A stretch of DNA of 64,000 nucleotides from Scyliorhinus canicula (lineage: Eukaryota), in NCBI RefSeq assembly GCF_902713615.1, contig NC_052158.1, positions 40,477,729 to 40,541,728 on the forward strand, written 5' to 3'. Below, in pieces: positions 8,071 through 51,146 of the stretch (positions are counted from its first letter, which is position 1; each line of letters opens with the position of its first letter). A program made the translations under genes and the position numbers. The notes below the pieces were generated by a model. It was not told where the DNA came from. It ran no database searches and saw only the letters and a list, made by a program, of their open reading frames with translations.

Positions 8071-8154
8071 AAATATTATTTCAATGGGCAGTAGCAATAC
8101 CTCCACCCCCAGTACCCCGATGTTAGTGGAAGATTCCGGTTTCCTTAGCCATAC

Positions 8155-30296: not shown

Positions 30297-30306
30297 TCTC
30301 ATTTCT

Positions 30307-30317
30307 GTTTCACTTTC
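30307..30317 (+). promoter_or_regulatory. ISRE / IRF-binding element of the class I promoter
   Basis: GTTTCACTTTC matches the ISRE consensus GTTTCNNTTTC, about 270 bp upstream of the ATG. CCAAT/ATTGG boxes at about 30408 and 30553. Confidence 0.7.
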
Positions 30318-30581
30318 TGAAACGCAACCTGTCTGAGTTTAATCTGCCTGGTAACTGGTGACTGAAGGTTGTTTATTTCTTTAACTGGGTAATTTTCTGA
30401 GACGAACCAATCATCCAGCCTCTGGTTCAGGAAATGATTAGACCTGGAGTTAAACATTAAAATGGAGTCTGAGTAAATTTATTATTTTAATGTGTCTCCC
30501 AGTCTGTAAACAGGATTAGTTTCCTCCTCAGAGAGTTTGATTCCCAGTCACTGATTGGAACAGGAACAGTGGATTCCCAGA

Positions 30582-30633
30582 ATGTTCCTGATCCTTTTCT
30601 CCATCTCCCTGTGTTTTTCCTGGGTCTCTCCCG
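30582..30633 (+). CDS. MHC class I exon 1, signal peptide MFLILFSISLCFSWVSP
   Basis: Hydrophobic 17-codon leader ending G|gtaagt (phase 1), just downstream of ISRE and CCAAT motifs. Confidence 0.85.
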
Positions 30634-33600
30634 GTAAGTACAGAATTCACTCTTCCATTCTCACTCTCTCTCTCTCTCTGTCACTTCTCCAGCTCAGGGT
30701 CCGGGCTGAAAATACTCTGGAGATTGTCTGGGAGAGTTTGAGCGTTTAGAAGGAATGTGTGACACAATTTTGCACAGACATGGCGAACACCCTCTTTACT
30801 ACAGGCTCCATTTGACTCTTGAACCTGAATTATAACCCCGCCCCCCCCTCCCGGAATGGATACCTGGGGAGGGTGGGGTTCGTACAATATAGGACAGTGT
30901 GCTCCTGGTGCCATATGCATCACCTGACCACTCCTGGAGCTAGGACTTCCCAGTCTGCCACTGGGATTTTCCCCACAGCTTGGGAGACGTGTACCAGGTG
31001 TTTAGCCTGGCCCCAGCAGGAACTGACAGCCTGGTGGCTGGACTGAGCTGGAGAGGAGGGTGCCCCTTGATCAGTCACACTGGCTGCAATTCTCAGTGTG
31101 GTGGTGGGCAGCTCGAGCCGTCTCACCGACCAGGATAGCAGGATTGGTGATGATCTTTCAGGAATCACTGAAGGCAGGAACGGTCCCAGAGGAATGGAAA
31201 GTGGCTAATGTAACACCGCTGTTTAAGAAGGGTGGGGGGCAGATGGTGGGAAATTATCGGCCGGTTAGCCTGACTTCAGTCATTGGTAAGATTTTAGAGT
31301 CCATTATTTTATCATGCACCAAGTACTTTGCAATCTCATCATTGAGATCGCGGAGTACTTGGAAGTGCATGATAAAATAGGACTGAGATAGCATGGCCTT
31401 GTCAAGGGGAGGTCGTGTCTGACAAAGAGTTCTTTGAGGAGGTAACAAGGAAGTTAGACAAAGGAGAACCAGTGGATGTGATTTATTTAGATTTCCAGAA
31501 GGCCTTTGACAAGGTGCTGCATAGGAGATTATTAAATAAATTAACAGCCCATAGTGTTTAGTGTAAGATCCTGGCATGGATAGAGGATTGGCTGACTGGC
31601 AGAAGGCAGAGAGGGGATAAAGGGGTCTTTTTCAGGATGGCAGCCGGTGACTAGTGGTGTGCCTCAGGCGGTCTGTGCTGGGACCATAACTTTTCACAAT
31701 CTACATTAATGATCTGGAGGAAGAAACTGAAAGCACTGTTGCTAAGCTTGCAGATGATACAAAGATGTGCAGAGGGACAGGTAGTATTGATGAAGCAAGG
31801 GGGCTGCAGAAGGATTTGGACAAGCTAGGAGAGTGGGCAATGAAGTGGCAGATGAAATACAAAGTGGAAAAGTGTGAAGTTATGCACTTCGGAAGGAGGA
31901 ATTGTTACATAGACTATTTTCTAAATGGGGAAATGCTTCGGAAATCAGAAGCACAAAGGGACTTGGTAGCCCTTGATCACAATTCTTTTAAGGTTAACGT
32001 GCAGGTTCAGTCGGCAGTTAGGAAGGCAAATGTAATGTTAGCATTCATGTCAAGAGGGCAGGAATACAAGATTAGGGATATACATCTGAGGCTGTATAAG
32101 GCTCTGGCTGGACCCCATTTGGAGTATTGTGAGCAGTTATGGGCCCCGCATCGAAGGAAGGTTGTTCTGGCCTTGGAAAGGGTCCAGAGGAGGTTCACAA
32201 GAATGATCTGTGGAATGGAGCTTGTCGTCTGAAGAGCGGTTGAGGACTCTGGGTCTGTACCCGTTGGAGTTTAGAAGGATGAGGGGGGATCTTATTGAAA
32301 CTTACAGGATACCGTGAGGCCTGGATAGAGTGGACGTGGAGAGAGTGTTTCCACTTGTAGGAAAAACTAGAAGCAGAGGACACAATCTCAGATTAAAGAG
32401 ATGATCCTTTAAAACAGAGATGTGGAGGAAGTTCTTCAGCCAGAGGGTGGTGGATCTGTGGAACTCTTTGGAACTCTGTGGAATGGGGATGAAAAAATAT
32501 CAGCCATGATTAAATGGCAGAGCAGTCTCGATGGGCCGAGTGGACTAATTCTGCTTCTGTGTCTTATGGGCTAATGGTCTTGTAGGATGTTGCATAGGGT
32601 CCGTCAACCAATTAGAAGAACTGAAACTAATGAAGAGATAAATAAAAGGCGGCCGATCCTGCAATGAACAAACGGAGCACAGCCCAAAAGAAAATGGAGG
32701 AACAGAAACTTCGAAACATCAAACCAAAATCTGAAAATTGGGGTTGGTAAAGAAGTCTAACCCCTGTGGTACCAACAGAGCACGGAAGGCGTCGAGTGTA
32801 TCCGTGGACACCGCATGTTCCCTCTCCAGGGATATCCGGCCACGAAAGCCACAGAAGATGGGCCGACAGTCCGGTCGGACGGCCCCTATGGTCGCCCGCT
32901 GCCTGGACCTCTTTATGGCACACTTTGCCAGGCCCAGGAGCAGGTTCACGAGGAGGCCCTCCGTCCTCCCCTCCACCCCCCGCTCCGGATGCCAGTAGAT
33001 CAGAAGCGTGGGCTGAAGTGCAAACAAAACTTTAACAACAACTTTGTTAAGAAACCAAAAAGGGAGTGCAGCCTAAAACACTCAACATTGACGTGGCTCA
33101 GGGACTCCAGAAGGCTGCAAAACTAATAGCTGTAGTGTCCTTTTAACCCCCCTTGTGAGCATTTCATGCAGCTTTGTCAAGGTCCAGCTCCCTACCCCAT
33201 GATGTTCCCTCTGCCTTCCATTATTTATCTTCCTCCATCTCCCCGTCCTCTGCCTGCCATCGTGAGCCTTGGCCCATCCCCAACCCCTGGCTCAACCCTA
33301 CTTCCACATTGTCCCAACTCCTTGTCTTCATCAAGCCACCACCACACATCCCTTCCCCAACCTCAACTCGCACTCCACCCCCAGTAAAATTCCAGACCTT
33401 TGTTGGGTTGGCTGCATGGGCCCAGCAGAACGGTGCAGTCCAGATAGACACTGCCATGTGTGGCACCGGAGGGCTGGAGGCCCCTATACTGCCCAACCCC
33501 AGGCACTATGCGAATCCCAGGTAGTGAGACAGGAGAGTCCATGGGTTCAGGAACACAGTGCTGATCATGAAGAACAGCTCAGCGTGAAGAAGGAGGGCGG

Positions 33601-36600
33601 GAACTTCCGAGCAGAGTGGTGAACAGCACATCAGACGTAGCACAGCACTAAGGCAGAAAGTTATTCACACATCTGGCAGCATTGAAAGGCCTGATGGGAT
33701 TCCGGCAGGCAACTGCTTTAATGAGCATTCCTGGAAGTGATTGCCATTCACACTGCCAGCCAGCAGGAAAGCTGGGCCGCCATTAGCCCACCACAGGGAC
33801 AAGCGCAACTGGATTTTATACCGGCAGGTTTCTGATCCCGGTGGGATCAGCGGATTCATCCACCAGCGAACAGCAGGAGAATTCTGTCCTTTATCTCCCA
33901 TCAAACCCTCTGTTGTATCATTCTTCACAATCTGTCCATCAGAAGTCCTCCTTCCCACATTTGCAAAGCCCCCTTGCTCCATCCTGATCATATTCCCCAC
34001 AATTCATTCTCTTTCCAGTTTTCTTCCCTCGTATTCTTCCTTCCTTCACTCACCACATAACTCCTCATATTGCTCACTATCTCGGCAATTTCTCACATCT
34101 GTCTTTCTGTTGCTCATTCCGAATTGCACTCTTCCCATACCGCTCACTCTCCCCATACCGCTCACTCTCCCCATACTTCTCACTCTATCCATACCGCTCA
34201 CTCTCTCCATACCGCTCACTCTCCCCATACTGCTCACTCTATCCATACCGCTCACTCTCCCCATACCGCTCACTCTCCCCATACCGCTCACTCTCCCCAT
34301 ACTGCTCACTCTCTCCATACCGCTCACTCTCTCCATACTGCTCACTCTCCCCATACCGCTCACTCTCTCTATACCGCGCACTCTCCCCATACCGCTCACT
34401 CTCCCCATACCGCTCACTCTCCCCATACTGCTCACTCTCTCCATACCGCTCACTCTCCCCATACCGCTCACTCTCCCCATACCGCTCACTCTCCCCATAC
34501 CGCTCACTCTCCCCATACCGCTCACTCTCTCCATACCGCTCACTCTCCCCATACCGCTCACTCTCCCCATACCGCTCACTCTCCCCATACCGCTCACTCT
34601 CCCCATACCGCTCACTCTCCCCATACCGCTCACTCTCTCCATACCGCTCACTCTCCCCATACCGCTCACTCTCCCCATACCGCTCACTCTCCCCATACTG
34701 CTCACTCTCTCCATACCGCTCACTCTCTCCATACCGCTCACTCTCTCCATACCGCTCACTCTCTCCATACCGCTCACTCTCTCCATACCGCTCACTCTCT
34801 CCATACCGCTCACTCTCCCCATACCGCTCACTCTCTCCATACCGCTCACTCTCCCCATACCGCTCACTCTCTCCATACCGCTCACTCTCCCCATACCGCT
34901 CACTCTCCCCATACCGCTCACTCTTCCCATACCGCTCACTCTCCCCATACCGCTCACTCTCCCCATACCGCTCACTCTCCCCATACCGCTCACTCTCCCC
35001 ATACCGCTCACTCTCTCCATACCGCTCACTCTCTCCATACCGCTCACTCTCCCCATACCGCTCACTCTCCCCATACCGATCACTCTTCCCATACCGCTCA
35101 CTCTCCCCATACCGCTCACTCTCTCCATACCGCTCACTCTCCCCATACCGCTCACTCTCTCCATACCGCTCACTCTCTCCGTACCGCTCACTCTCCCCAT
35201 ACCGCTCACTCTCCCCATACCGCTCACTCTCCCCATATCGCTCACTCTCCCCATACCGCTCACTCTCCCCATAATGCTCACCCTCCCCATACCGCTCACC
35301 CTCCCCATACCGCTCACCCTCCCCATACCGCTCACTCTCCCCATACCGCTCACTCTCCCCATACCGCTCACTCTCTCCATACCGCTCACTCTCCCCATAC
35401 CGCTCACTCTCTCCATACCGCTCACTCTCTCCGTACCGCTCACTCTCCCCATACCGCTCACTCTCCCCATACCGCTCACTCTCCCCATATCGCTCACTCT
35501 CCCCATACCGCTCACTCTCCCCATAATGCTCACCCTCCCCATACCGCTCACCCTCCCCATACCGCTCACCCTCCCCATACCGCTCACTCTCCCCATACCG
35601 CTCACTCTCCCCATACCGCTCACTCTCCCCATACCGCTCACTCTCCCCATACCGCTCACCCTCCCCATACCGCTCACTCTCCCCATACCGCTCACTCTCC
35701 CCATACCGCTCACTCTCTCCATACCGCTCACTCTCTCCATACCGCTCACTCTCCCCATACCGCTCACTCTCCCCATACCGCTCACTCTCTCCATACCGCT
35801 CACTCTCCCCATACCGCTCACCCTCCCCATACCGTTCACTCTCTCCATACCGCTCACTCTCCCCATACCGCTCACTCTCTCCATACCGCTCACTCTCCCC
35901 ATACCGCTCACTCTCCCCATACCGCTCACTCTCCCTACACAGCTCACTCTCCCCATACCGCTCACTCTCCCCATTCCGCTCACTCTCCCCATTCCGCTCA
36001 CTCTTCCCATACCGCTCACTCTCCCCATACCGCTCACTCTCCCCATACCGCTCACTCTCCCCCTACCGCTCACTCTCTCCATACCGCTCACTCTCTCTCC
36101 CCATACCGCTCACTCTCCCCATACCGCTCACTCTCCCCATACCGCTCACTCTCCCCATACCGCTCACTCTCCCCATACCGCTCACTCTCCCCATACCGCT
36201 CACTCTCCCCATACCGCTCACTCTCCCCATACCGCTCACTCTCTCCCCATACCGCTCACTCTCCCCATACCGCTCACTCTCCCCATACCGCTCACTCTCC
36301 CCATACCGCTCACTCTCCCCATACCGCTCACTCTCCCCAGGCTACTCATTCTCCCTATATGCTCACATTCCCCATCGTGCTCACTCTCTCCATACCGCTC
36401 GCTCTCCCTGTATGCTCACTCTCCCTGTACTACTCACTCTCCCTGTGTGCTTACTCCCCATCGTGCTCACTCTGCCCATACCGCTCGCTCTCCCTGTATG
36501 CTCACTCTCCCTGTACTATTCACTCTCCCTGTGTGCTTACTCCCCATCGTGCTCACTCTGCCCATACCGCTCGCTCTCCCCATCGTGCTCACTCTGCCCA

Positions 36601-39600
36601 TACCACTCACTCTCCCCATCGTGCTCACTGTCCCTGAACTACTCACTCTCCCTGTTCGCTCACTCTCCTGTACTGCTCACTCTCCCCATACCGCTTGCTC
36701 GTCCGCGTACCAATCGCTCTCCCTGTACAGCTCTCTTCCCGTACCTTCCGCTCTCCCATTTCCGCTCACTCTCCCTGGTGGAAAGCGAGTGATCGGTAGT
36801 GTGATGTCTTGTTTGATTTGCCCCTCGTGGGCAGCCTAAACCAGGCTACCTGGTCATTTGCCCTGCCATTGTGGGATCTTGCTGTGTACAAATTCATTGT
36901 CATGTTTCCTCCAGTGACTGCATTCCTAAAGTCCTCATTCCAGCCGCTCCATCACCAAAACCACCAGATTCCAGTTCAATTTCTTTCTTCCAACTCAACC
37001 CCTCCCTCATCTGCTGCCAATTTTCTCACTCAGGATTTTTGACCCCAGAACATTTGATTTTCCAATTATCTCCTGGCTGGCCTCCCATTGTCCACCCTCC
37101 GGAAACTAAAGCTTATCCATAAGGCTGCTGCTGATATTTCCTTTGCTGCAGTGAACTTGTTTATCAATCAGGGAGGATTCTGGTGTTAATATAAAGTGAC
37201 AGACTGTAGGAGATTGTCATTGTGTGGTCCCGATTCATCTTGTTTAGTTAGTACCATTTGGGAAATGTTAATTCCTCATTAACCAATCCCTTCCTTTGTT
37301 TATTTCACAGATATTGATTCCTTTACTGTGCTGTACACAGGAATCTCCGGCATTCCTGGTTACCCTGAGTTTGCCGGTATGGCAATGCTCAATGGAGTAA
37401 TATTATCCCATTACGACAGTGACACCCTTCAGATGTTTTCCAGACACCAATTCATTACAGACTATCTCAATGTGGAAGAGTGGGATTACCTCAATGTCCT
37501 GGGAAAGAAACATTACGATGTAATGATGGGGACCATGAATACGATCCTGAAATTGATGAACCAGACAGTTGGTATGGCTAAGGAAACCGGAATCTCCCAC
37601 TAACATGGGGGTACTGGGGGTGGAGGTATTGCTACTGCCCATTGAAATGATATTTCATCGCAAGGCGGCACTGTGGTTGGCTTCGCAGCTACAGGGTCCC
37701 AGGTTCGATTCCGGCCTTGGTTGCTGTCTGTATGGAGTTTGCGCTTTCTCCCGTGTGTATGTGTGTGGGTTTCCTCCGGGTGCTCTGGTTTCCTCCCAAA
37801 GATGTGCACGTTAGGTATTATAATAGATATTATAATAATCTTCATTATTATTTTCCCAAGTAGGCTTATATTAAACATTGCCATGAAGATACTGTGAAAA
37901 TCCCCTAGTCACCACACTCCGGCATCTGTTCAGGTACACTGAGGGAAAATATAAAATGTCCAATTCATCGAACAAGCATGTCTTTCGGGACTTGTGGGAG
38001 GAAACCGAGGGAGGCCCACGCATACACGGGGGGAACGTGCGGACTCCGGACGGACAGTGGCCTGGGCCGGGAATCGACCCTGGGACCGTGGCGCTGTGGG
38101 CCAGCTGTGCTAGCCACTGTGCTACCGTGCTTCCCATGGTGGATTGGCCATGCTAAATTGTCCAAACATTGGGTGGGGTTGCTGGGTTACAGGGATCGGG
38201 TGGAGGCATGGGCTTAAGTTGGCTGCACTTTCCAAGGGCCGGTGCAGACTCGATGGGCCGAATGGCTTCCTTCTGCACTGTAAATTCGATGATTCTATGT
38301 TGTTTTTCTCACTCTCCCAACCCGACTGCTTCCACTTTTCCCACTCAACCCCATATTGGCTCATTGGCCATTCCTGGTTTGTACTTCCTGCTTTATTCCC
38401 ACTCCTGAGGTCTTCCACATCCTCTAGTTCTGAGGATATCCACTCTCTCAGCTCAAACATTAAAGATATCGGAAGATGAGGGATAAGAGTGAGGGGGAGA
38501 AGTTAAGCAACTTGATTAAAAAGAGACACACAGAAGAGAGGGGGAAGGGAAAGTGAGTGAGGAGGAGAGAGAAAAGGGACAGTTATGGAGGACGAGCGAA
38601 AGGTATTTTTTTGAAAATGTTTTTATGAAGAGTTCTTCATTTTATACAATACACCATAAACAAAACTGTACAAACCAAATACAATTTACAAGGATCAAAC
38701 ATTAAAATAACCCCCTTCCCCTATTTTTCTTGTACAGAATGTTTTCCTTGCTGGTTCTTCATTTCCCGACACAGCAGGGCCATATAGTGACACATATATT
38801 ACACAGTGATAAATCAAGCCTCGTCGGCTACCTGTATTTACAAACTTTTGGTCTGGGGGGAGTGATCAGTGTCTGTGCCTCCCTATTTTCTCCCCCTCCC
38901 TCTCCCCTTGGTGTCTGTGGTCCCTCTATGACCCCCGCTCCTTCCCTTTGCTCTATTGGCTGTTGGCTACAACAGGTTCTGGAACAAGTTGGTGAATGGC
39001 TTCCACGTCTTGTGGAAGCCCTCTTCCGACCCCCGGATGGTGAATTTGATTTTTTCCAGGTGGAGAAATTCCGACAGGTTGGGCAGCCAGTCCACAGCTG
39101 TGGGAGGTGCTGCTAATCGCCAATCGAGCAGGATGTTTGGGTGGCCGATTAGGAAGATAAAGGCAAGGCTGCGGCCCCTCTCCCCAAGACGAGTTCTGGC
39201 TCGTCTGCTACCCCGAAGATTGCCACTTTTGGACTTGGCACCCTCGCCCCCACAACCTTGGACATTACCTCAAAGAAATTCGTCCAGAACTCAACAAATC
39301 TGGGGCATGCCCAGATCATGTTGGCCGGGCCTCTCTGGCACCGTCCACATTTGTCCTCCACCTCCAAGGAACAAATGTTCTTTCAGGTTCTGGTTAGTTG
39401 TGTGCTGTGTACCACTTTCAGCTGCGTAAGGCTTAGCTGTGTGCATGTGCAGGGGGAGTTGATCCTGTTCAGTGCTTCGCTCCAGTGTTCCTACTATTTC
39501 TATCTCTGGCTCTTTCTCCCATTTTTCTCTTGTCCCGCCTAGTGGGGAGTGTGCCGGTCCCAACAGTCGGCCAGATAAGTCCCGTGGTTCCCCCCCCCCC

Positions 39601-42600
39601 CCCCCTCAAGTTGCCCACGTCCAACAGTTCTTCTGATAATGATTTTCCCGGCGCTGTGGGTATGTCGTCGGTTCCCTTCGGACGAAGTTTTTGAATTGCA
39701 TGTGTCGTAACTCGTTTCCCCCTGGTTAGTTTTTTAAAAACATTTAGAGCACCCAATTATTTTTTTCCAATTAAGGAGCAATTTAGCGTGACCAATTATT
39801 CTACCCTGCACATCTTTGGATTGTGAGGGCGAAACCCGATCCCTGTAACCCAGCAACCCCACCCAATGTTTGGACAATTTAGCATGGCCAATCCACCATG
39901 GGAAGCACGGTAGCACAGTGGCTTGCACAGCTGGCCCACAGCGCCACGGTCCCAGGGTCGATTCCCGGCCCAGGCCACTGTCCGTCCGGAGTCCGCACGT
40001 TCCCCCCCCGTGTATGCGTGGGCCTCCCTCGGTTTCCTCCCACAAGTCCCGAAAGACATGCTTGTTCGATGAATTGGACATTTTATATTTTCCCTCAGTG
40101 TACCTGAACAGATGCCGGAGTGTGGTGACTAGGGGATTTTCACAGTATCTTCATGGCAATGTTTAATATAAACTTTGGATTGTGAGGGCGAAACCCACGC
40201 AAACACGGGGAGAATGTGCAAACTCCACACAGACAGTGACCCAGGACAAGGATCGAACCTGGGACCTCGGCACCATGAGGCAGCAGTGCTAACCACTGCG
40301 CCACCTTGCTGCCCATTCCCTCTGGTCAGTCGAAGCCTCTTTGTCGGCTCCTATAGTTTTGTCAGTCTGTTGGCTCTGTAGAAGTCCCTGTCTGTCAGTG
40401 TCCTCTGTCCTGTCTCCACCTTTTAAAGGTGGCATCCATCTTGGCTGGCATCAACCTGTGATTGTTGTAGTTGAGGATCCATAGTGGACATTTCGGTCAG
40501 ACCGATGTGTCGTCTTAGTTGGTTCCATGTCCAAAGCGTGACTATTACCACTGGGCTTGTTGAGTGCTTGGCTGGTGGGCTTGGGAGCGCTGCTGTGGCG
40601 AGGGCTCGGAGGGATGTCCCTGTGCAGGAACTCTCCTCCATTTTCACTCATTCTGCTTCAAGTTCCTTTACCTGTTCCATCACTACCTCTGCTGTGGCGT
40701 CCCAGTAGGAATACAGAAAATTAGGGAGGGCCAGGCCCCCCCTGCGTGGCCTTGGATTCTTCTTCTTTCCCAATGTCCATCTCAATGTCCTGATACAAAT
40801 CGGTCTGGTGTCCATCCACGTTGCAGGTTCTCGTCTGGCTGGCCCATTGCAGGATTCTCTCCCGGTCTTGGCACCGGTACAATTATTGCCCTCGGCTGCT
40901 CCACGGCCGTGGATTTCGGCCGGAGCAACCTAAGAGCCCTCTCTATCTCCGGCAGTCTGGGGAAGCTGTTCATTCCCACCAGATTTCCCAGGATCTTGGC
41001 TACGTAGTCCGTGTGGTTCCAGCCTTCGGTTCCCTCTGGCAGTCCCACTATTCTGAATTTCTGCCGCCTTGATTGATTCTCTTGGTCTTCCACATTTCCC
41101 TTCAGCTTGCTCTGGGCCACCATAAACCTTGCTATCTTTGTCTCTGGGGCGATGAGCCTTAATTGTGCTTTCCTCGGCCTGTAGTCATCTCTCTGCTTTG
41201 TCGAGGGCCACCTACATGGCGGCCATTGCTTCCGTGACCACCACATTGACCGCCACCTGGATTCCGAGTCTGATGTCTGCTTTGAGCTCCTTTAGCTCTC
41301 TGGTGAGGAACTTCCTCCAGCTGCCCTCTGGCGAGGGGAAGTTCCTTGCATGGCTTGTTGGCTCCTCTTGTTCAGGTGCTGCCAGGGATTCTTCGTCTTG
41401 TGGGTCCACCATCTCACTCGCCAGTTTTTCCAGGCTCCAGTTGCCTCTTGTTTCCTTACGGCCTCTGATACAGCTGTTGCTTGGCATTTCGGTTAATATT
41501 TTATATCTTAATTTGTAGATTGAAGAGAGTGATGAGGGTATGCTTTTTTTCTTGGTTCTGGCGCTATTTTTGATTTCCTAGGAAGAGAGTCACCTTCTGT
41601 GCGTCCACTCAGCACATCCCCGTCACTGGAAAACTTGAGAGAAGGGGTATTTTAAAAATAAATTTGAAGGACCCAATTAATTTTCTTTCCAATTAAGGGG
41701 CAATTTAGCATAGCCAATCCACCTGCCTTGCACATGTTTGGAGTGTTGGGGTGAGACCCAAGCAGACACGGGGAGAATGTGCAAACTCCACACGGACAGT
41801 GGCCCGGGGCCGGGATCGAACCTGGGACCTCGGTCCTCGGCTAACCACTGCGCCATCGTGCCACCTCGTCTTGAGAAAAAGGCTATCGAGGTGAAGGAGA
41901 TGCATCAATGATGGAGAAAGGAGCAGGAAGTATGAGCAGAGAAGGTGATAGTGGTTACAGAGAGCAATATGGGGAGGGAAGCAGGGGAAAGCAGAGGTGG
42001 TGGCCTGAGAGGAGGTAATTGTTTAGTGGCAGTGTTACTGGACTGATGCTCAGGTTCAATTCTTAGGAAGAATGCAGGTGGGATTTAAATTCAAGTAACA
42101 GGATGAAATGAAAAAGGAATGGGACAGAAATCTGCCATTCTTGCCCAGTCTGACCTACATTTACTCCAGACCCACAGTAATGACCCTTTACTGTCCTTTG
42201 AAAAGGCCGAGCAAAACACTCAGTTGTATCCCATGCCAGTACGGTGGCGCAGTGGGTTAGCCCTACAGCCTCACAGCGCCGAGGTCCCACGTTCGATCCC
42301 GGTTCTGGGTCACTATCCGTGTGGAGTTTGCATATTTTGCTAGGGCTGGTTTAGCTCACTGAGCTAAATCGCTGGCTTTTAAAGCAGACCAAGCAGGCCA
42401 GCAGCACGGTTCGATTCCTGTACCAGCCTCCCCGGACAGGCGCCGTAATGTGGCGACTAGGGGCTTTTCACAGTAACTTCATTGAAGCCTACTCGTGACA
42501 ATAAGTGATTTTCATTTTTTATTTTTTTTCATTTCATCCAACTGCTCCAAAGTCAATGAGACAGAAAGAAACCGGACAGACTACCCGGCATTGACAGGGA

Positions 42601-45600
42601 CACTGGAAACGACAATGGCAAACCCAGTCCTATCGCCCCTGCAGAGTTCTCCTTTCTAACATCTGAGGGTTTGTGCCAGCATTGGGAAAGCTGTCCCACA
42701 GACTAGTCAAACAACAGTCTGACATAGTCATACCTTACAATGTCCCAATCCTTATTCTTCCAATGGCAGGATAGAACAGAGTTCAATTGAGGTGGTGCAC
42801 ATTCGAGAGGAAGTTGATCTGGGAGACCACAAAGATTCATGGCATCAGGTCAAAGGTGGGCAAGGAATCCTCCTGCTGATTATTACTGAGCCACCAACCC
42901 CCACCCTCACCCTCCCTCAGCTGATAAATCCTGTGTTGGGGATCACAGGGTTTAGTGAGAGGGAGGAACTGAAGGAAATCAGTATTAGTAGAGAAATGAT
43001 GTTGGGGAAGCTGATGGGATTGATGCTGGTAAATCCTCACGGCCTGATAATCCATATCATAGAGTACTGAAGGAAGTGGCCTGAGAATTAGTGGATGTAT
43101 TGATGGTCATCTTCCCAGATTTTATAGACACTGGAACAGTTCCTGCAGATTGCAAGGTCGCTAATGTATTTAAAAAGGGAGGCAGAGAGAAAACCGAATC
43201 ATAGACCAGTGAGCCTGACTTTGGTAGTGGGCTGTACAAATGCCAGGCAATAACCATTTCCAACAAGACAGAATTCAACCATCTCACCTTGACATTCAAT
43301 GGCATTACCATCAATGAGTCCCCCAATATCAACATCCTGGAGGTTACCATTGATCCAAAATTCAACTGGGCTAACTATATAGACACTGTGCCTGCAAGAG
43401 CAAGGCGGAGGTTGGGCTATCTGTGGCGAGTAACTCACCTCCTGACCCACCCCAAAGCCTGTCCTCCATCTACGGTAGCACAGTTGTTAGCACTGTTGCT
43501 TCACAGCGCCAGGATCCCAGGTTCGATTCCCGGTTTGGGGCACTGTCTCTGCAGAGTTTGCCTATGTCTGTGTGGGTTTCCTCCGGGTGATCCGGTTGCC
43601 TCCCACAGGTCCCGAAAGACATGGGGCGTGATTCTCCGCAAATGCGGAGAGTCCTGAAGGCTGCCGTGAAACCGGCCGTGTTTCACGGCAGCCTCCGCGC
43701 CCCCTCCCGGGACCCGATTCTGCTCCCCGGTCGGGGCTAGCAGCGGGGCCCCGTGAACTTCGGCATCGCGGGCTTAGCGAATTTCGCTAAGCCCGCGCGC
43801 CAAAGTTAGCGACAGCTGACGCATATGATGATGTCAGCCGCGCATGCGCGGATTGGACGGCTCCAACCCGCGCATGCGAGGATGACGTCATCACGCATAT
43901 GCGTTAAACCCGCGCATGCGCGGGCCGTTATGTCCCTCAGTAGCCCCACGGACTGATACAGCGGGGCGGCGGAGGAACAAAGAGTGCCCACCGATCACGG
44001 GCCCATGGCACCCGTGGTGCGGCCGTGCCAATCGGTGCCATGGTTCCCCAGAACGGCACTTTGCGGCCGTTTTTACGAACTGTGATAGCAGGTGTGTTGG
44101 AGTTCTTAAAAACGGCCGTAAAGGCCTGGGAACTCGGCCCATCGGCCAGGGGAGAATCGCTGTTTGCCGTAAAAAACTGTGAGCAGCGATTCGTGTCGGG
44201 GGGAGGGGGGGGGGGGGGGGAATAGCGGGATGTCGGGAAGGCCCTTACGCTATTCTCCGACCCATCGTGGGGGGCGGAGAATCGCGCCCATGCTGTTTGG
44301 TAATTTAGAAGTTCTGAATTTCTCTCTCTGTGCACCCTAACAGGCGCCGGAATGTGGTGACGAGGGGCTTTTCACAGTAACTTCATTGCACTTTTAATGT
44401 AAGCCTACTTGTAACAATAAAGATTATTATTATTTCAAAGCATAAGACAGGAGTGTCATGGAATTCTCTCCACTTGTATGGATGAGTGCAGCTCCAACAA
44501 GAAGCTTGACAACATCCAGGACAAAATAATCCACTTGATTGCCCCCCATCCACAAACACCTGAAGCAAAGTTTTGCGGCCTCAATCAATGACAGGATTTT
44601 CCGCTCCAACCAAAGTTGGTCTTTGGAAAGCTTCCTGTATTTTACGCCCCCACCCACACCGCGTTGAAGCGTTAAATTACCACCCATGGGAACACCAGCA
44701 TCTGGAGGTTCCCCTCCAAGTCACTCACCATCCTGACTTGGAAATGTATCACCGCCGTTCCTTCACTCTCGCTGGGTTAAAATCCTGGAACTCCCTTCCT
44801 AACAGCACAATGGGTGTACCTACATCTCAGAAACTGCAGCGGTTCAAGAAGGCAACTCACCACCACCTTCTGTAGGGCAATAAATGCTGGCCTAACCAGT
44901 AACGCCCACATGCTGAAAATGAATAAAAGAAGGATTATTTTCCAAAAAGAACAGTAATTGGAACACGTCATTGGAATATAAAGCTAATATACTGTGTAGA
45001 ACCCTGGACTTGCAACATACCCAAAATTGATTTCTACTGACTTGAATTTAGTGGAAAATCCAGTGGGATGTAGAATCCCCATAGCCTCCATATCCAGTGG
45101 ATTAGGCCCCATTTCCTTGTCTGAATACCTTATCTGAATTGTGAAAAGACTTTTCTAATCAACAGTGAATTATTGGTTATTGATCTCTGGTGTCTGACAG
45201 GATTTCACACTTTTCAATGGATTCGGTCTGTCGAGGTCACTGAAGACGGCTCCATTAAGAGATCGATGAGGTTTGGATTTGATGGAAAGGATTATATTAG
45301 TTTAGAGCCAGACAGGATGAGATGGGTCGCATCCAATCACATCGCAGTGAAGACTAAAGAGAAATGGGATTCGGATCAATCTTGGAATGAGCACTGGAAA
45401 TGGCAGATGGAAGTAGAACTGATTAGCCTCTTAAGGAAATATTTAAAAATTGGAAAGGAATTTCTCAAAAAGAAAGGTATTGATTTGAGTTTTGATCCAT
45501 GTTCTGATCTAACTTCACTGATCTATCAAACCGTTCTCCCATTCCATTCAGTGTCTGTCTATTGTTTGTGTTTTCACCCTTTCCCATTACAGTTCAGCCT

Positions 45601-48600
45601 GAAGTCTTCATCTCCAGAAGTGAGGCCAATAGTCAGTACAAGCCGCTCACTCTCTCCTGCCTGGTTACTGGGTTTTATCCTGTAGACATCGAGGTGACCT
45701 GGCTAAGGAATGGAGAGGTAATGTCTGAGACACAATCCTCGGGGCTTCGACCGAACCACGATGGGAGCCATCAGATCCAGAAAGAGATTGAAATAAATGC
45801 TGGGGATGAGGATCAATACTCCTGTCAAATTGAACACAGCAGCCTGGCAGAGCCCAAGCTCCATCAGTGGGGTAAGGAATTGAACTGGATGTGCGTGGAT
45901 GAGTACTTGCGTGCATCTGACTACATTTCTTCTTTTTACGAGGTCCTACACTCTCACCATCGGGAAAATTTCTGATTTGTTTTTCTCAGATTTAATGTGG
46001 ATGATCCCATACTTCCCACATTGGGGAAAACTGTGGCAGATGGAATTCACTCATTTAATCAATCAATGTTCCTTCACTGTGTCTCCTAACTTAGTGCCAT
46101 CTGTAAACTGGGATATAAAACTCTCTGTCCCTTCATCCAAGTCATTAATGTAGATGGTGAAAACCTGACCCAGGACAGATCCCTCGGGAATACAACTGAA
46201 CCCATCCTGCCAATGGGAGCACATTCGCTTTATCCCCATTCCCTGTGTCATAACTCCAACCAATTCCCACCCCCTGCCACAGATTGCCTCCAATTCCAAA
46301 CACGCTGATTATTATCAAGAATCTGTGCGGAACCTTATCAATGACCTTCTGGAGTCCATCTGGAGCAGATCCATAGATACTCCCTTATCCACCATGTCAG
46401 TGAGATCCTGATCAAATTCAATGTGATTAGTCAGACATGAGCCCCCATCACAGATCCATCCTGTCTCTCTTTGATCAGCTGATTCTCGTCCCAATGTCTG
46501 GAGCTCAATCTCTGGCCATTTGTGAATCTTTTCTTTGAGTTGGATTCTCTCACTTATTCCATGTGTGGTCCATGGTGGCTTCACTGCAGTCGGTTAGGAC
46601 TAAGTTCTGTGTTGGATTGTACCAAGTGCTTCTTTTGAAGCGTTTGCTCTGTTTATCTGTTGTTTCCCTCATTATCAGCTCAGCCCAGTTTCCTGTGGTC
46701 AGTTTATTCCTCATCCCTTTGAAGTTTGATGTGAAACCCATCAGTGATGCTGCCTCCTGGGCCGTACAATGTTACCCTGGAGATTGAGCAAGGACAGGAC
46801 ACAGAGACATTGGGGAGAATTAGAACTGAACTGGCCGGGAAGGTAACCCACGGGATTGGGACAACACGGCTTTGACACCCCCATCAATGGGAATCTTTAG
46901 TGACTTCACTGAAGAGTGAAATCGGGCGATTGTGAAACCAAAGTTTCAACCAATCCCATCAATTCCCAATGGGCTGCTTCAGTTCAAATTGCCCCCAATT
47001 AACACAGAACTGGGAATGGATCCGGGAACAGAGAGACAATCCTCATATTATTCAGATCTCTTTCAGAAATCCCGGAAAACAGTGGGGATGGCTTCCACCT
47101 TGGAATTATAATCGGATTAGTCATCACTGTACTGGCTGTTATATTCGTGATAATCGGAATAATCATCTGGAAAAGGCAAAGGAAAGGTAAGAATCTGAGA
47201 GGGGGGAATGTAGAACTGAGGGGACAGAGTGAGTGTGGGGGAATCCCCAGTACTGGGAGTACAGGACACTGAGAGGGGAATGTAGAACTGAGGGGACAGA
47301 GTGAGTGTGGGGGGATCCCCAGTCCTGGGAGTACAGGACACTGAGAGGGGAGAGAGAGGGGAATGTAGAACTGAGGGGACAGAGTGAGTGTGGGGGGATC
47401 CCCAGTACTGGGAGTACAGGACACTGAGAGGGGAGAGAGAGAGAGGGGAATGTAGAGCTGAGGGGACAGAGTGAGAGTGGGGGAATCATAGAACATAGAA
47501 CAGTACAGCACAGAACAGGACCTTCGGCCCTCAATGTTGTGCCGAGCCATGATCACCCTACTCAAACCCACGTATCCACCCTATACCCGTAACCCAACAA
47601 CCCCCCCTTAACCTTACTTTTATTAGGACACTACGGGCAATTTAGCATGACCGATCCACCTAACCTGCACATCTTTGGACTGTGGGAGGAAACCGGAGCA
47701 CCCGGAGGAAACCCACGCAAACAGGGGGAGGACGTGCAGACTCCACACAGACAGTGACCCAGCCGGGAATCGAACCTGGGACCCTGGAGCTGTGAAGCAT
47801 TTATGCTAACCACCATGCTACCCTGCTGCCCCAGTACTGGGAGTACAGGACACAGAGAGGAGAGAGAGAGAGAGAGGGGAATGTGGATCTGAGGGGACAG
47901 AGTGAGTGTGGGGGAATCTCCAGTACTGGGAGTACAGAACACTGAGAGGGGATAGTGAGAGATGTGGTGATCGTAGATCTGACTAGATGCAATACAACTG
48001 AGCAAGCACTAGTGGGAGCATGGGGGAGCTATAAATACACCATGACAGGAAGTGAGGACACACTTCACGGAAGGCAGAACTGGTAGCAGGACACAGAGAC
48101 AAGCAGGCAGCATTTGAGGTAGCCGTACGTTAAGGTCTGAAGAGAGAACAAATTCACAATAAAGCATCTTCTCCACATTTGAGACTACGAGCTTTATTAA
48201 GACACGAGGAACAACACATGGTACCATGAGTGGCTTCAGACGCTTACTACAGGACAACTCAGCTGCAGATACAGAAAGAACAAAATGGCATGGAAATCTC
48301 CTACTGGACATTCGACTTGGGAAGACATCGCTAATTCGAGGATGTGGCTTGGATGTCCACCTCAGCTGGAGACGACTGGCAATGTAAGAAATGTCTGGAA
48401 AAATTTTAAACAATGGTTTGATTCATATATCATAGCTAATGATGTAGCAGCAGCCTCAGACGAAATTAAAATAGCAATGCTCATCGCAGGACATGAAGCT
48501 AGGAAAGTATATAATGGATTTAAATACTCAAAAGATGAAGACAGCAACAGTTTACAAATAATACTAAAAAAATTTGAAGAGTACTGTAAGGAATTTGAAC

Positions 48601-51146
48601 AGCACGGCATGCTCAGAGGCCAAACTGCACAGAGACTGAGTGATGCAAAACTTGAACAATCACTAATGTTCAACACGAATCTACTCGTGGTAGACAAATC
48701 CTACCAAGATGATTTGGTTTTCGAAGAATACTACTCAGACATGGCTGAGTTATTCGGATATGCTGATCACAGCATCAGCGACACAGTCGCAAAGCTCAAC
48801 ACGAATCTACTCGTGGTAGATGAATCCAACACCATGGTGCCATGGCAGATCGTCGATACATTGGATGATGGCATTACCCAATACGAAGACGATGCCACAC
48901 AGAGAGCACAGAAAGACTCCACAGAGAGAGCGATGACAGGCTCCACAGTGAGAGTGATGAAAGACTCCAACAGGGAAGCAAGCAAACACTCCCTGGCGAA
49001 CACCATGCATGAACAAGACCATGAAGGTCAACCCGCTGTATCTGAGCAACCGCAAGCAGACTATGAAAGTCTACCAAGCTCACATGAATAAGAAGAAGAC
49101 AATGTGAAAACAGTGACAAGGTGATCACACTCGACGTACAGGATCACAGCGAGACTGACAGTTCTCAGCTTGTCTGTACAGAAGCACAGAGTAGGGCCAC
49201 CCAACAGTCCAGAGAGACAACGCCAATGGAAACCATGCAGACTTTGACTCAAGAAGAGGAGCACCAAGAGTCCAGTGAGACAACATCAACAGAAACCATG
49301 AAGATTTTGACTCCGGAAGAGGAGCACCAGGAATCCAGAGAGACCGCGTCAAATGAAATCGCGAAGAATTTGACTCCAGAAGAGGAGCACCAAGAAAGCA
49401 AAGATGACAAATCAAATCCACAACAAATGACTGATGTCACCAGCATCAATGCAACATCAGATCAGTCTCACCATTCTCGAGATGAAACGTTCAAAGCAAC
49501 AGATTCCACAAAGGACACTCGCACCAATAACTGTGACAATTACTCAAATTATCCACACGGGACACTCATTGCGCATAACAAGAAAAACAAAAGCCAAAAG
49601 AAGCACAGCAGAAACGAGAACAACAACAGCAAGAACAAAAGCAACATGAAGCGCGACAAGAACAACAAAAATCGCAGGAAACACTGCAGAAACAAGAACA
49701 ACAACAGCACCAACAAAAACTACAAGCATAACCACAAAAACTACATGAAGAACAACAAAACTAACAAGAAGCATAACAAAGATAGCAACAACAAAGACAG
49801 AAATGACAAAAACAGCAACAAGAACGGCAACAAAAACAACAAAGACAGGAACGACAGAAACAACAGCAATGAAACAACGACTTGTACAAAATGGTACAAC
49901 TCTGCACATGAAGGACAATGCCACAGCACACTGCAAAACAATGAAAAGACTACAAACATGCCATGGGATGACAACAAATCGCACAAACTCACATCTGCTC
50001 CAGAACAAGCAAGCACACCAGCTTTCAAGGCGGATGAGATAATAAATTGATACCACAAGCACAGAAAAAAGTCCATGTCAGTCAACATCAGTGGTTTGAC
50101 CATGAAAACACCTCGGGATGACGCATTGGTTACTTAAAATAACAGGAACACCGACAACATTCACCACGTCAACAACAACAAAAGAAAAAAACTCTGAACA
50201 AATTCATCAAGTTTGGACTCATAAATGTTTTTATTGAGTGGACTCATAAATATAAATTGGCTTTGTAAAATATGCAATAGCACCATCATTTGTATAGATA
50301 CACATATCATAAGTAACTGTTTTGTATAATTTTCTTTAACGATGTACAGAAAATATGTAAAGAAAAAAGTGGGGATGTGGTGATCGTATATCTGACTAGA
50401 TGCAATACAACTGAGCAAGTACTAGAGGGAGCATGGGCGAGCTATAAATACACCAGGACAGGAAGTGAGGACACACTTCACGGAAGGCAGAACTGGTAGC
50501 AGGACACAGAGACAAGCAGGCAGCATTTGAGGTAGCCGTAAGTTAAGCTCTGAAGAGATAACAAATTCACAATAAAGCATCTTCTCCACATTTGAGACAA
50601 CGAGCTTTATTAAGACACGAGGAACAACACAAGAGAGAGGAGAATGTAGAACTGAGGGGACAGAGTGAGTGTGGGGGAATCCCCAGTACTGGGAGTACAG
50701 GACACTGAGAGGGGAGAGAGAGAGGAATGTAGAACTGAGGGGACAGAGTGAGTGTGGGGGAATCTCCAGTACTGGGAGTACAGGACACTGTGTTGAATGA
50801 ACTGATTTAATTCCCACACAGATACACGTATAAACACATCTTGTTTCCGGTCTGACCTTCCTTTGTGTGATCAGCCCAGACCAGGTCTAATATTGATCAT
50901 TAAACACACCACACACACTCACATCCTCACCTAATGAATATGGATGGAATGGAAGAGATCTACAGGATCTCCATAAAGTGTAAGGATGGAGGGGAGTGTG
51001 GGAATGAGTATTTCTCACACAATCTCCATTCCCTCACACTTGTGTTCTCATTCTCTGATAATGGATTATTCCCCATTCTAACTGACATTTATTTTACTTC
51101 TGCAGATTCACCGAGTGTGATCTACACAACAGCTCACAGTGAGTGA
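30582..51146 (+). CDS. Nonclassical MHC class I heavy chain, complete 6-exon gene (join 30582-30633, 37311-37571, 45201-45476, 45593-45871, 47067-47186, 51106-51146; 1029 nt, 342 aa)
   Basis: All introns are GT-AG and phase 1; internal exon lengths are multiples of 3 (261, 276, 279, 120). The spliced ORF is open from ATG to TGA and gives leader, alpha1, alpha2, Ig-C1 alpha3, TM and a short cytoplasmic tail, the canonical class I layout. Confidence 0.93.
31140..32580 (+). mobile_element. Degenerate CR1 fragment in MHC intron 1 (mirror copy about 13500-14930, - strand)
   Basis: NYRPVSLTS, DFQKAFD and LEYCEQLWAP motifs with frameshifts. Confidence 0.88.
34130..36780. repeat. 18-bp minisatellite (ATACCGCTCACTCTCCCC)n in MHC intron 1
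   Basis: More than 100 tandem units, degenerate toward 36350-36780. Confidence 0.97.
37311..37571 (+). CDS. MHC class I exon 2, alpha1 domain
   Basis: tatttcacag acceptor and G|gtatgg donor, 261 nt. Translates DIDSFTVLYTGISGIPGYPEFAGMAMLNGVILSHYDSDTLQMFSRHQFITDYLNVEEWDYLNVLGKKHYDVMMGTMNTILKLMNQTV, with class I motifs YTG..PEF, YDSD, W60 and the NQT glycosylation site. Confidence 0.9.
40780..41580 (-). mobile_element. L1/Tx1-clade ORF1 remnant (mirror about 2870-3740, + strand)
   Basis: ENQSRRQKFRIVGLPEG...ERALR...PRAIIV, typical of the L1 ORF1p RRM region. Confidence 0.7.
43624..44289. mobile_element. GC/CpG-rich MITE-like element in MHC intron 2
   Basis: Terminal inverted repeat GGGCGTGATTCTCCGC / GCGGAGAATCGCGCCC (15/16 match); splits a SINE. 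Confidence 0.75.
45201..45476 (+). CDS. MHC class I exon 3, alpha2 domain (cysteine-less)
   Basis: gacag acceptor and G|gtattg donor, 276 nt. Translates GFHTFQWIRSVEVTEDGSIKRSMRFGFDGKDYISL...KTKEKWD...LLRKYLKIGKEFLKKK, with DGKDYI, TxxKW and KYLxxGKExL motifs. Confidence 0.95.
45593..45871 (+). CDS. MHC class I exon 4, alpha3 Ig-C1 domain
   Basis: 279 nt. VQPEV...LTLSCLVTGFYPVDIEVTWLRNG...PNHDGSHQIQKEIEI...YSCQIEHSSL; both Ig cysteines, FYP and the core Trp are present. Confidence 0.97.
47067..47186 (+). CDS. MHC class I exon 5, connecting peptide and transmembrane segment
   Basis: ctttcag acceptor and G|gtaaga donor. EIPENSGDGFHLGIIIGLVITVLAVIFVIIGIIIWKRQRK: hydrophobic run followed by a basic stop-transfer sequence. 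Confidence 0.93.
47487..47831 (-). mobile_element. Young HE1-like SINE inserted in the intron-5 tandem repeat
   Basis: Reverse complement of 21939-22289 with few differences. Confidence 0.88.
47963..50631 (+). mobile_element. Non-autonomous LTR retrotransposon (no pol) in MHC intron 5
   Basis: 256-bp LTRs at 47963-48218 and 50376-50631 (about 9 differences), 5-bp TSD AGAGA, PBS TGGTACCATGAGTGG at 48219 and PPT AAAAAAGTGGGGA. Interior has a gag-like N-terminus, then low-complexity coding sequence. Confidence 0.92.
51106..51146 (+). CDS. MHC class I exon 6, cytoplasmic tail DSPSVIYTTAHSE*
   Basis: Polypyrimidine tract plus tgcag acceptor, in phase with exon 5, YxxA motif, then TGA. Confidence 0.75.

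Follow-up and report, generated by a model that had tools for sequence, protein, structure and literature searches.

The closest described system to the gene analysed here is the shark class I lineage UEA, which reportedly occurs in sharks and was not detected in rays and chimaeras. The residues that anchor the peptide termini are said to be mostly replaced in UEA, by more hydrophobic ones. According to a 2025 review, UBA and UEA are the only expanded class Ib families in sharks. The class Ib cluster is bordered by B2M and BRD2 on one side and by HSD17B8, RXRB, SLC39A7 and COL11A2 on the other (PMC10751288), and the cluster by B2M/BRD2 has been assigned to UDA and the multicopy UEA (Veríssimo et al. 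2023, PMC10751288). Class Ib families that expanded within a single lineage and have divergent grooves are also found in Xenopus (XNC, mhc1-uba) and in the teleost L lineage, both of which originated independently of the shark family; a hydrophobic groove of the L lineage is discussed in a section of one report (PMC4364491). In the teleost S and P lineages both alpha2 cysteines are reportedly retained.

We analysed a window of 64,000 nucleotides of Scyliorhinus canicula (chr13:40477729-40541728), which holds the RefSeq gene LOC119975572 (NC_052158.1 40508165-40533866; supplementary file 2 of PMC10751288). This is a genuine, intact class I-like gene of the catshark. In our judgement it is very probably a nonclassical (class Ib) gene with seven exons, a member of a shark-only multicopy family without the alpha2 disulfide that is almost certainly UEA, and its product would pair with beta2-microglobulin and would not hold 8-10-mer peptides by both termini.

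Gene structure and promoter

The features of the gene and its promoter are given below in positions of the window.

30302..30323, + strand: ISRE-like element, TTTCTGTTTCACTTTCTGAAAC, the complement of which contains GAAAGTGAAAC; about 115 nt upstream of the NCBI gene start
30347..30413, + strand: X1/X2-like box, CCTGGTAACTGGTGACTG, followed by a CCAAT box; resembles the SXY module of MHC promoters
30582..30633, + strand: exon 1, with the start codon and a signal peptide of 17 residues; donor GTAAGT, phase 1
37311..37571, + strand: exon 2, alpha1 domain with V7, E59, L84 and N86-Q-T
45201..45476, + strand: exon 3, alpha2 domain with neither cysteine (V101, L164); T143, K146, W147 and Y171 retained
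45593..45871, + strand: exon 4, alpha3 C1-set Ig domain with its cysteine pair
47067..47186, + strand: exon 5, connecting peptide, transmembrane helix and basic stop-transfer sequence WKRQRK
51106..51138, + strand: exon 6, cytoplasmic DSPSVIYTTAH; donor GTGAGT from 51139
56095..56138, + strand: exon 7, cytoplasmic end (T)SEVPVPEPSQFSK; acceptor CCTCAG, stop TAG at 56136-56138

Exons 1 to 5 have AG/GT borders throughout and are joined in phase 1 with an uninterrupted frame, which bears out the spliced class I reading frame from 30582 described in the initial annotation. Its 3' end had to be revised. The proposed terminus S-E-stop at 51146 (stop codon 51144-51146) is intronic, because it results from reading through the GTGAGT donor at 51139. 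RefSeq proteins of paralogs run on past ...TTAH with T-SDVPVPE(A/P)S, and the homologous exon lies here at 56095-56138. Its stop codon coincides exactly with the final base of NCBI gene LOC119975572 (supplement of PMC10751288). With this exon the predicted product has 354 residues in place of the 342 assumed before. It would be a type I membrane glycoprotein made up of a signal peptide, alpha1, alpha2 and alpha3 Ig domains, a transmembrane helix and a short tail. Two ORFs in intron 5 and one in intron 1 (31765-32229) yielded no Pfam domains.

The X1/X2-like and CCAAT motifs are conserved across nine aligned paralog promoters with an overall identity of 70-96%; to the SXY consensus they show a resemblance. 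Of ten paralog promoters, only two or three contain the ISRE-like element; in the neighbouring copy 12 bp of it are missing and alpha1 carries a frameshift pair. Transcription would be expected to use an MHC-type promoter with an ISRE-like element, and a response to interferon may be mediated by the latter, as judged from its motif.

Loss of the alpha2 disulfide and of peptide anchors

The alpha2 exon matched Pfam MHC_I with 7.8e-17 and the alpha3 exon C1-set with 2.8e-18. The alpha1 exon had no Pfam match and was aligned to solved class I chains with a weak 6.4e-5. Both partners of the alpha2 disulfide had been described as missing, and phmmer alignments to solved chains gave the same result: C101 is replaced by V (WIRSVEV against WMYGCEL) and C164 by L (MEVELIS against LEETCIE). 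A hydrophobic V101/L164 pair is thus predicted to occupy the former disulfide site. The same alignments placed Q opposite Y159 and L opposite W167, while T143, K146, W147 and Y171 were retained. In alpha1, V stands opposite Y7 and E opposite Y59. The residues at these positions agree with those first read from the sequence, as do L84, where classical class I has Y84, and the N86 glycan site (NQT), both of which were located by counting backwards from the end of the domain. The alpha1 helix, noted earlier as rich in Met, Leu and Val, contains 4 M, 4 L, 2 V and 1 I in 31 residues. Altogether only four of the eight classical anchors for both peptide termini are kept (T143, K146, W147 and Y171).

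Compared with classical class I, represented by shark UAA and, as the numbering reference, HLA-A2, LOC119975572 shares the exon plan, the phase-1 introns, the fold, the N86 glycan site, the alpha3 disulfide, T143, K146, W147 and Y171 as well as the predicted pairing with beta2-microglobulin. It differs in lacking the C101-C164 disulfide, in the replacement of Y7, Y59, Y84, Y159 and W167, in a groove that is conserved across species instead of variable, and in its location in the class Ib cluster.

The initial annotation read the paired cysteine loss as a sign of a functional molecule with an open or flexible groove end for N-terminally extended peptides or non-peptide ligands, which implied a special gene. 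A search of the genome of S. canicula itself detected 12-13 alpha2 exons with 55-100% identity at 35.9-41.1 Mb of chr13, none of which encodes either cysteine. The remaining class I alpha2 exons of this genome reach no more than 38% identity and retain both cysteines. In some 90 family proteins, which come from 13 shark species, position 101 was V in 81 and C in none, so that the loss is a trait of the family and does not set this gene apart. Nor is it strictly paired: at position 164 the family has L, F, Y, S, G, D or C, with cysteine in about 10 members. We conclude that the cysteine loss is an old and tolerated family trait rather than decay. C101 would have been lost in the ancestor of the family, after which position 164 would have been free to vary. 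Because the teleost S and P lineages reportedly keep the pair, the loss in the shark family is unusual among class I lineages; a paper on H-lineage teleosts contained nothing usable as a precedent for alpha2 cysteine loss.

The anchor positions showed a mixed pattern in the family. V at position 7 was found in 57 of 90 sequences, positions 159 and 167 were variable, and at position 84 S, R, N, M and G occurred. On the other hand T143, K146 and W147 were kept in 68, 83 and 94 of about 95 sequences, respectively, and the alpha2-helix stretch SWN-x-(H/Y)-W-K-W was conserved throughout.

Probable assignment to the UEA lineage

LOC119975572 was labelled 'MHC-Ib' by Veríssimo et al. 2023 (PMC10751288, supplementary file 2) and lies among 15 genes so labelled in the interval from SLC39A7 (35.6 Mb) to B2M (41.36 Mb)/BRD2 (41.46 Mb) (PMC10751288). 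At 40.51-40.53 Mb it is located inside the class Ib cluster adjoining B2M/BRD2. The family is multicopy; 23 promoter or leader matches were found in the genome in addition to the alpha2 exons. Matches with at least 50% identity came from 13 shark species only, which represent both superorders and include Heptranchias and Pristiophorus, with rays and chimaeras covered by protein searches only; the best ray protein (Mobula) was 39% identical.

Like UEA, the family of LOC119975572 is multicopy, is located in the class Ib cluster by B2M/BRD2 and has most anchors replaced (in LOC119975572 Y7V, Y59E, Y84L, Y159Q and W167L, with T143, K146 and W147 still kept); its matches with at least 50% identity come from sharks. 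We found no difference between the two in this comparison of descriptions, not sequences. We take the family to be, almost certainly, the UEA lineage published by Almeida et al. 2021 (J Immunol 207:824), a name that follows from map position, copy number and taxon range and not from a joint tree. Membership in a described multicopy lineage such as UEA had been considered in the initial annotation, which conceded that such a placement would remove the novelty of the gene; by position, copy number and taxon range both the placement and its consequence hold.

Alternatively, the published UEA could consist of other genes of the same cluster and the family described here be a separate, undescribed lineage. 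None of the homologue and cluster-name matches returned carries the name UEA, and the RefSeq names of family members are all automatic ('F10 alpha chain-like'). The papers citing the descriptions of UEA and UDA gave no residue-level detail on either. Yet this is the sole expanded family in the cluster assigned to UDA and UEA (PMC10751288), and the other expanded family, at 32.1-32.4 Mb (C4-RXRB), has both cysteines and fits the description of UBA (PMC10751288). We therefore regard a separate lineage as very unlikely.

An old sublineage with a conserved groove

In alpha1-alpha2 the product of LOC119975572 is 79% identical to a sequence of Mustelus, 72% to one of Cetorhinus and 66-67% to those of Heptranchias, Heterodontus, Chiloscyllium and Pristiophorus, compared with at most 58% to the paralogs of S. 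canicula. The seven orthologous sequences form one clade with an SH-aLRT of 99. For the alpha1 exon there is a single close copy in the genome (84% amino acid identity), and all others are at most 42% identical. These comparisons place the gene in an old, distinct sublineage that is represented by a single gene in each of seven sharks, which belong to both major groups.

The seven orthologues share 74% identity over 38 positions equivalent to the groove, compared with 68% over the rest. The paralogs of S. canicula had 47% identity at groove positions vs 63% elsewhere, and none of 2000 random position sets scored as low. The groove positions of the sublineage are conserved across species and differ from those of the paralogs within one species. 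In this comparison of species the groove is at least as conserved as the rest, a tendency opposite to the polymorphism of classical grooves. Exon 4 and intron 3 have 100% nucleotide identity to several paralogs. The alpha3 exon is kept identical among paralogs by gene conversion.

Identity maintained by conversion irrespective of selection, together with the lesions of the neighbouring copy, would also suit a gene that is silent and turning into a pseudogene, with an open frame left over from recent duplication or gene conversion. We consider this very improbable. None of the seven exons has an interrupted frame or a damaged splice site, and orthologues with 66-79% identity in alpha1-alpha2 exist in six other sharks across the deepest split of the group. 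Furthermore, words of one stretch, 0.47 of which is the alpha1 exon alone, were found at 0.36-0.46 in small RNA-like assemblies of four studies. The presence of alpha1-exon words there is a hint of transcription.

Predicted fold and candidate ligands

Fold and complex were predicted with the Mustelus orthologue, the one with 79% identity in alpha1-alpha2, and not with the catshark protein. AlphaFold2 modelled it with a pLDDT of 90.7, and the top structural matches were class I chains with a TM of 0.88. Together with the Pfam results this gives the class I fold, i.e. an alpha1-alpha2 platform and a C1-set alpha3. Chicken BF2, YF1*7.1, ZAG and MR1 scored alike, which means that the fold search cannot separate peptide-binding from lipid-binding class I chains.

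The structure prediction with beta2-microglobulin called for in the initial annotation supported pairing. The complex test yielded 0.86 vs 0.11 for the best control, three runs shared at least 97% of contacts, and the partner had a pLDDT of 90. Of 78 solved complexes 51 attained the mark of this test, as did 2 of 108 mismatched pairs; for class I with beta2-microglobulin, a heavily solved combination, a pass may reflect memory of solved structures. With this in mind we infer that the heavy chain would pair with beta2-microglobulin and reach the cell surface. Peptides of 8-10 residues would not be gripped at both termini. What T-cell or NK-type receptors would meet instead is a single conserved ligand, probably hydrophobic or modified at its N-terminus, or else a fixed surface.

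A possible functional analogue is chicken YF1*7.1 (MHC-Y; PDB 3p73, 9eb2-9eb6), because in its solved entries, to judge by their titles, the groove is occupied by N-acylated amino acids or by lipopeptides. It is likewise nonclassical with an otherwise classical fold and was among the best alpha2 matches (4.7e-15). However, it keeps the alpha2 cysteines and belongs to a bird lineage with no orthology to the shark gene. A ligand of this type for LOC119975572 is speculation by analogy.

The reading put forward in the initial annotation was that of a molecule that presents peptides in a groove open at the A-pocket end; T143, K146 and W147 would hold the C-terminus, and N-terminally extended peptides would protrude. 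The retention of these three residues here and in most of the family, the substitution of Y7, Y59, Y159 and W167, and a fold nearest to peptide-binding avian class I chains are all in line with it. Because position 84 is not conserved in the family, however, the F-pocket set is incomplete, the KTKEKW motif may persist for structural reasons, and the conservation of the groove across species fits a single ligand better than a peptide repertoire. We hold this reading to be distinctly unlikely. The family-wide T143, K146 and W147 are also compatible with anchoring of a peptide C-terminus, which counts against the single conserved ligand that we favour.

Conservation of groove positions across species would also fit a ligand-free molecule. 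In such a molecule W152, W156, M160, L164 and L167 would narrow or fill the groove, and the only role of the protein would be that of a surface ligand recognised by NK-type or other receptors, like MIC, HFE and FcRn. The loss of the N-terminal anchors and the family-wide SWN-x-(H/Y)-W-K-W agree with this, and ZAG and MR1 are found next to classical chains among the fold matches. Yet the sharp divergence of the paralog grooves is more easily explained by differing ligands than by empty grooves, and we rate a ligand-free groove as possible but unlikely. The evidence favours N-terminally extended peptides over neither other ligands nor no ligand at all.

As for the single conserved ligand, we tentatively propose a more specific form. 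Provided that the paper describing UEA does not already resolve it, the sublineage with the signature E/D/N/Q59, Q159, L164 and L167, old, with one member per species in both superorders and with its own ISRE-like element, might be a candidate for a monomorphic molecule that presents a single conserved ligand, either non-peptide or lipopeptide, and operates without the alpha2 disulfide. On balance we think this possible but doubtful.

Implications for the family

LOC119975572 is an ordinary member of a known group. Its RefSeq entry, the published MHC-Ib flag and the description of the family all pre-exist, which gives it modest weight as a discovery. A useful yield is the corrected gene model with seven exons and 354 residues. 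For ligand and structural work the choice of a UEA member would lie between conserved sublineages with one gene per species and the expanding multicopy part of the family, where grooves diverge and yet the alpha3 exon is held identical through gene conversion. Because the disulfide is absent family-wide, the class I platform appears to have been functional without this bond for a very long time in sharks.

Gene structure of LOC119975572

The coding exons of LOC119975572, the focal class I gene, were placed as listed.

Exons of LOC119975572 (window coordinates)
30582-30633, + strand: exon 1, signal peptide; GT-AG, phase 1
37311-37571, + strand: exon 2, alpha1; GT-AG, phase 1
45201-45476, + strand: exon 3, alpha2; GT-AG, phase 1; Pfam MHC_I 7.8e-17
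45593-45871, + strand: exon 4, alpha3; GT-AG, phase 1; Pfam C1-set 2.8e-18
47067-47186, + strand: exon 5, connecting peptide and transmembrane helix; GT-AG, phase 1
56095-56138, + strand: exon 7, encoding (T)SEVPVPEPSQFSK-stop; CCTCAG acceptor; matches paralog tails

All introns were GT-AG and phase 1 with clean borders, and the intact spliced ORF proposed in the initial annotation was thus confirmed for exons 1 to 5. The alpha1 exon was too divergent for a Pfam match and aligned weakly with solved class I chains (best 6.4e-5). The 3' end had to be revised. The previous 342-aa product ended at 51146 in a frame (…TTAHSE-stop) that reads through a GTGAGT donor beginning at 51139. Paralog proteins in RefSeq, from S. 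canicula and S. torazame, run on as …TTAHT-SDVPVPE(A/P)S, and the stop codon of exon 7 ends at window position 56138, i.e. chr13:40533866, the exact end of the NCBI gene. Taken together, donor, paralog tails, tail exon and gene end indicate that a model of seven exons and 354 aa is better than the 342-aa model.

RefSeq isoforms X2 of several paralogs (proteins P0202, P0228 and P0207) skip the transmembrane exon and join alpha3 straight to DSPS…; their products would be soluble. In LOC119975572 the frame would likewise survive the skipping of exon 5.

Residues of the platform and predicted fold

The alpha2 exon was aligned without gaps to solved chains by phmmer, the best being Anolis class I (7cpo, 6.2e-17). 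In HLA numbering Val replaces C101, Leu C164, Gln Y159 and Leu W167, while T143, K146, W147 and Y171 are retained. Alignment of alpha1 with duck class I gave Val for Y7 and Glu for Y59; Leu84 and the retained N86 were placed by counting from the NQT sequon. The residue assignments of the initial annotation, including the absence of both partners of the alpha2 disulfide, were therefore correct, as was its description of a Met/Leu/Val-rich alpha1 helix (4 Met, 4 Leu, 2 Val and 1 Ile in 31 residues).

Structure was modelled on the Mustelus orthologue P0193 (residues 18-288) in place of the focal protein. AlphaFold2 with an 83-row alignment returned normal class I secondary structure at a pLDDT of 90.7. 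Foldseek ranked chicken and duck class I first (TM 0.88), closely followed by YF1*7.1, shark UAA (6lup), ZAG and MR1, a ranking of a predicted model that does not tell what ligand the groove would hold. When P0193 was combined with exon 2 of catshark beta2-microglobulin (locus L030:1789-2058), the predicted complex scored 0.86 versus 0.11 for the best control, and three runs agreed in at least 97% of contacts with a pLDDT of 90 for the partner. Of 78 solved complexes 51 attained the mark applied in this test, as did 2 of 108 mismatched pairs. Because class I/beta2-microglobulin pairs are heavily represented among solved structures, the predicted pairing shows likeness to such complexes and not binding by this copy.

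Loss of the alpha2 cysteines

An exhaustive HMMER search with alpha2 and three word-based searches yielded about 100 proteins. The family was found in Scyliorhinus canicula, S. torazame, Mustelus, Carcharodon, Cetorhinus, Heterodontus, Heptranchias, Pristiophorus, Chiloscyllium plagiosum, C. punctatum, Hemiscyllium, Stegostoma and Rhincodon; the top ray protein, from Mobula, was 39% identical. When 100 sequences were aligned with MAFFT, 81 had Val at position 101 and 6 had Ile, Leu or Ala; Cys was confined to one poorly aligned fragment and to three proteins from another lineage that formed the outgroup. The residue at 164 was variable, with Leu in 31, Phe in 20, Tyr in 10, also Ser, Gly and Asp, and Cys in about ten family members. 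The most conserved alpha2 segment was KTKEKWDSD-SWN-YWKW, which contains T143, K146 and W147. As 101 is never Cys in well-aligned members while 164 varies, a single loss of C101 took place in the ancestor of the family and position 164 drifted afterwards, so that the loss is not strictly paired. The initial annotation had taken a paired loss as the mark of something special in this gene; it is instead an old, family-wide trait of an annotated gene.

The members with C164 but without C101 (about ten, among them proteins P0167, P0194, P0200, P0212, P0217, P0218, P0233, P0238 and P0241) are left with an unpaired cysteine on the alpha2 helix.

Assignment of the family

LOC119975572 is already annotated and its family already mapped. 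The window covers chr13:40477729-40541728. Supplementary file 2 of Veríssimo et al. 2023 (PMC10751288) places it at NC_052158.1 40508165-40533866 (+) as one of 15 'MHC-Ib' genes at 38.35-41.12 Mb of chromosome 13 in S. canicula, flanked by SLC39A7 (35.6 Mb) on one side and B2M (41.36 Mb)/BRD2 (41.46 Mb) on the other. The same study describes UFA as a CD1-like gene of this first cluster and a second cluster, in the c4-rxrb interval, holding UBA only. A 2025 review names two expanded shark class Ib families in all, UBA and UEA.

A six-frame search of the genome with the alpha2 exon recovered the exon itself, an exact duplicate lying 1.7 kb ahead of the window, and some eleven further exons of 55-75% identity at 35.9-41.1 Mb; no family alpha2 exon in this search had a cysteine at 101 or 164. 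Other class I alpha2 exons (32.0-32.5, 36.8, 38.5, 39.2, 43.7 and 52.9-53.0 Mb) were 26-38% identical and had both cysteines. Among these, the expansion with cysteines at 32.1-32.4 Mb, flanked by C4 and RXRB, agrees with what Veríssimo et al. say of UBA. Given these positions and identities, the family is the sole expanded one in the cluster which that study assigns to UDA and UEA. Homologue records in the databases carried automatic RefSeq names only, and none was named UEA. Map position, copy number and elimination together identify the family almost certainly as UEA.

Concerted evolution of alpha3

Compared with paralogs, alpha2 had a dN of 0.15-0.24 and a dS of 0.24-0.50 (ratio 0.3-0.8). 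In seven of eight compared paralogs, on the other hand, intron 3 and the alpha3 exon were 97-100% identical in nucleotides to those of this gene, several being fully identical, and homology with most paralogs was detectable only over about 45171-45897. This disparity indicates that the domain binding beta2-microglobulin is kept uniform by gene conversion as the platform diverges, and the adjoining alpha2 dS points to a sharp-edged conversion tract at intron 3/alpha3. The segment 45477-45871 was identical or nearly so in loci L003, L005, L006, L008 and L009 across 1.2 Mb.

The neighbouring copy and repeats

An inverted copy (leader about 15440-15490, alpha1 about 8155-8415, alpha2 1.7 kb before the window) is 94-96% identical to 27511-45481. 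It fills exactly a 20.1-kb piece, window 1-18152 plus chr13:40475765-40477728 (L029), between two 500-N gaps (chr13:40475265-40475764 and window 18153-18652). Beyond the second gap lies a stretch, 19131-21083, that aligns with 55020-56947 in the same orientation and includes a tail exon at 20209-20289 (+). If flipped, the piece becomes a colinear tandem duplicate with its alpha3-to-exon-6 part inside the gap; the inversion may thus be a scaffolding orientation error. The alpha1 exon of the neighbouring copy (window 8135-8435, -) has eight substitutions and two indels, a +1 insertion and, at a distance of 32 nt, a -1 deletion; these change the reading of roughly 11 codons, after which the original frame resumes. 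Over the 310 nt that reach to the gap, the alpha2 exon of the copy and its flanks show 100% identity.

A long minisatellite in intron 1 (34046-36800), shared with the neighbouring copy, reads as repeated PIPLTL or HTAHSP in open frames reaching 1032 aa, and a tandem array of about 59 bp period lies downstream of the gene at 56161-61119. Intron 5 holds a 2.2-kb insert (47961-50631) between 258-bp direct repeats (96.5% identical), with open frames at 48285-49091 and 49121-50050, the second K/N/E-rich, neither matching Pfam. The 5'UTR with the leader exon recurs (97-99% identity) at chr13:40461127-40461218 (+, L044), 39315118 and 41049445, apart from any matching alpha1 exon that belongs to this sublineage; these copies represent either paralog leader exons kept uniform or orphan fragments.

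Promoter and transcription

Three elements, identified by consensus resemblance only, lie upstream of the NCBI gene start (window 30437).

Promoter-like elements (window coordinates)
30302-30323: ISRE-like element
30347-30365: X1/X2-like box, conserved in nine aligned paralog promoters
30405-30413: CCAAT box, conserved in nine aligned paralog promoters

The ISRE-like element was shared with one gene at 39.395 Mb and partly with one other, and was absent from the remaining aligned promoters. The neighbouring copy lacks 12 bp of it, TTTCTGTTTCAC (window 30302-30313 versus about 15745-15760, -), the rest of promoter and leader being about 98% identical.

Transcription was assessed with the 31-mers of a 521-nt stretch, of which the alpha1 exon alone makes up 0.47. 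Small RNA-like assemblies from four studies held 0.36-0.46 and large DNA-like assemblies 0.52-0.78 of these words, run types being guessed. For alpha2, intron 3 and alpha3 the RNA-like type held 0.47-0.67, where exons alone would give 0.77. With run types guessed, this suggests that the exons may be transcribed without their flanks.

A conserved sublineage

Over alpha1-alpha2 the gene was 79% identical to a Mustelus protein, 72% to one of Cetorhinus and 66-67% to single proteins of Heptranchias, Heterodontus, Chiloscyllium punctatum and Pristiophorus, versus at most 58% to S. canicula paralogs. IQ-TREE, run as a quick search on 75 rows of alpha1-alpha2, grouped the seven orthologues in one clade (SH-aLRT 99), and the alpha1 exon had one close relative in the genome, the neighbouring copy (84%), all others being at most 42% identical. 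The sublineage is therefore older than the divergence of the two shark superorders, and about one copy per species has been kept since. The same tree held two more groups: one, with long tails and likewise conserved with one member per species, includes S. canicula LOC119975713, and the other is large and expanding.

Finally, 38 groove-lining HLA-A2 positions were mapped onto the alignment by hand, uncertain by one residue near indels; the seven orthologues were 74% identical there versus 68% elsewhere, and six S. canicula paralogs 47% versus 63%. In 2000 random draws of positions, no set came down to the value of the paralog groove. A groove conserved among orthologues and divergent among paralogs indicates that each sublineage keeps its own. 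This pattern speaks for function and for different fixed specificities, and against a classical variable peptide repertoire. The one-per-species sublineage with its conserved groove may be the new element in this family.
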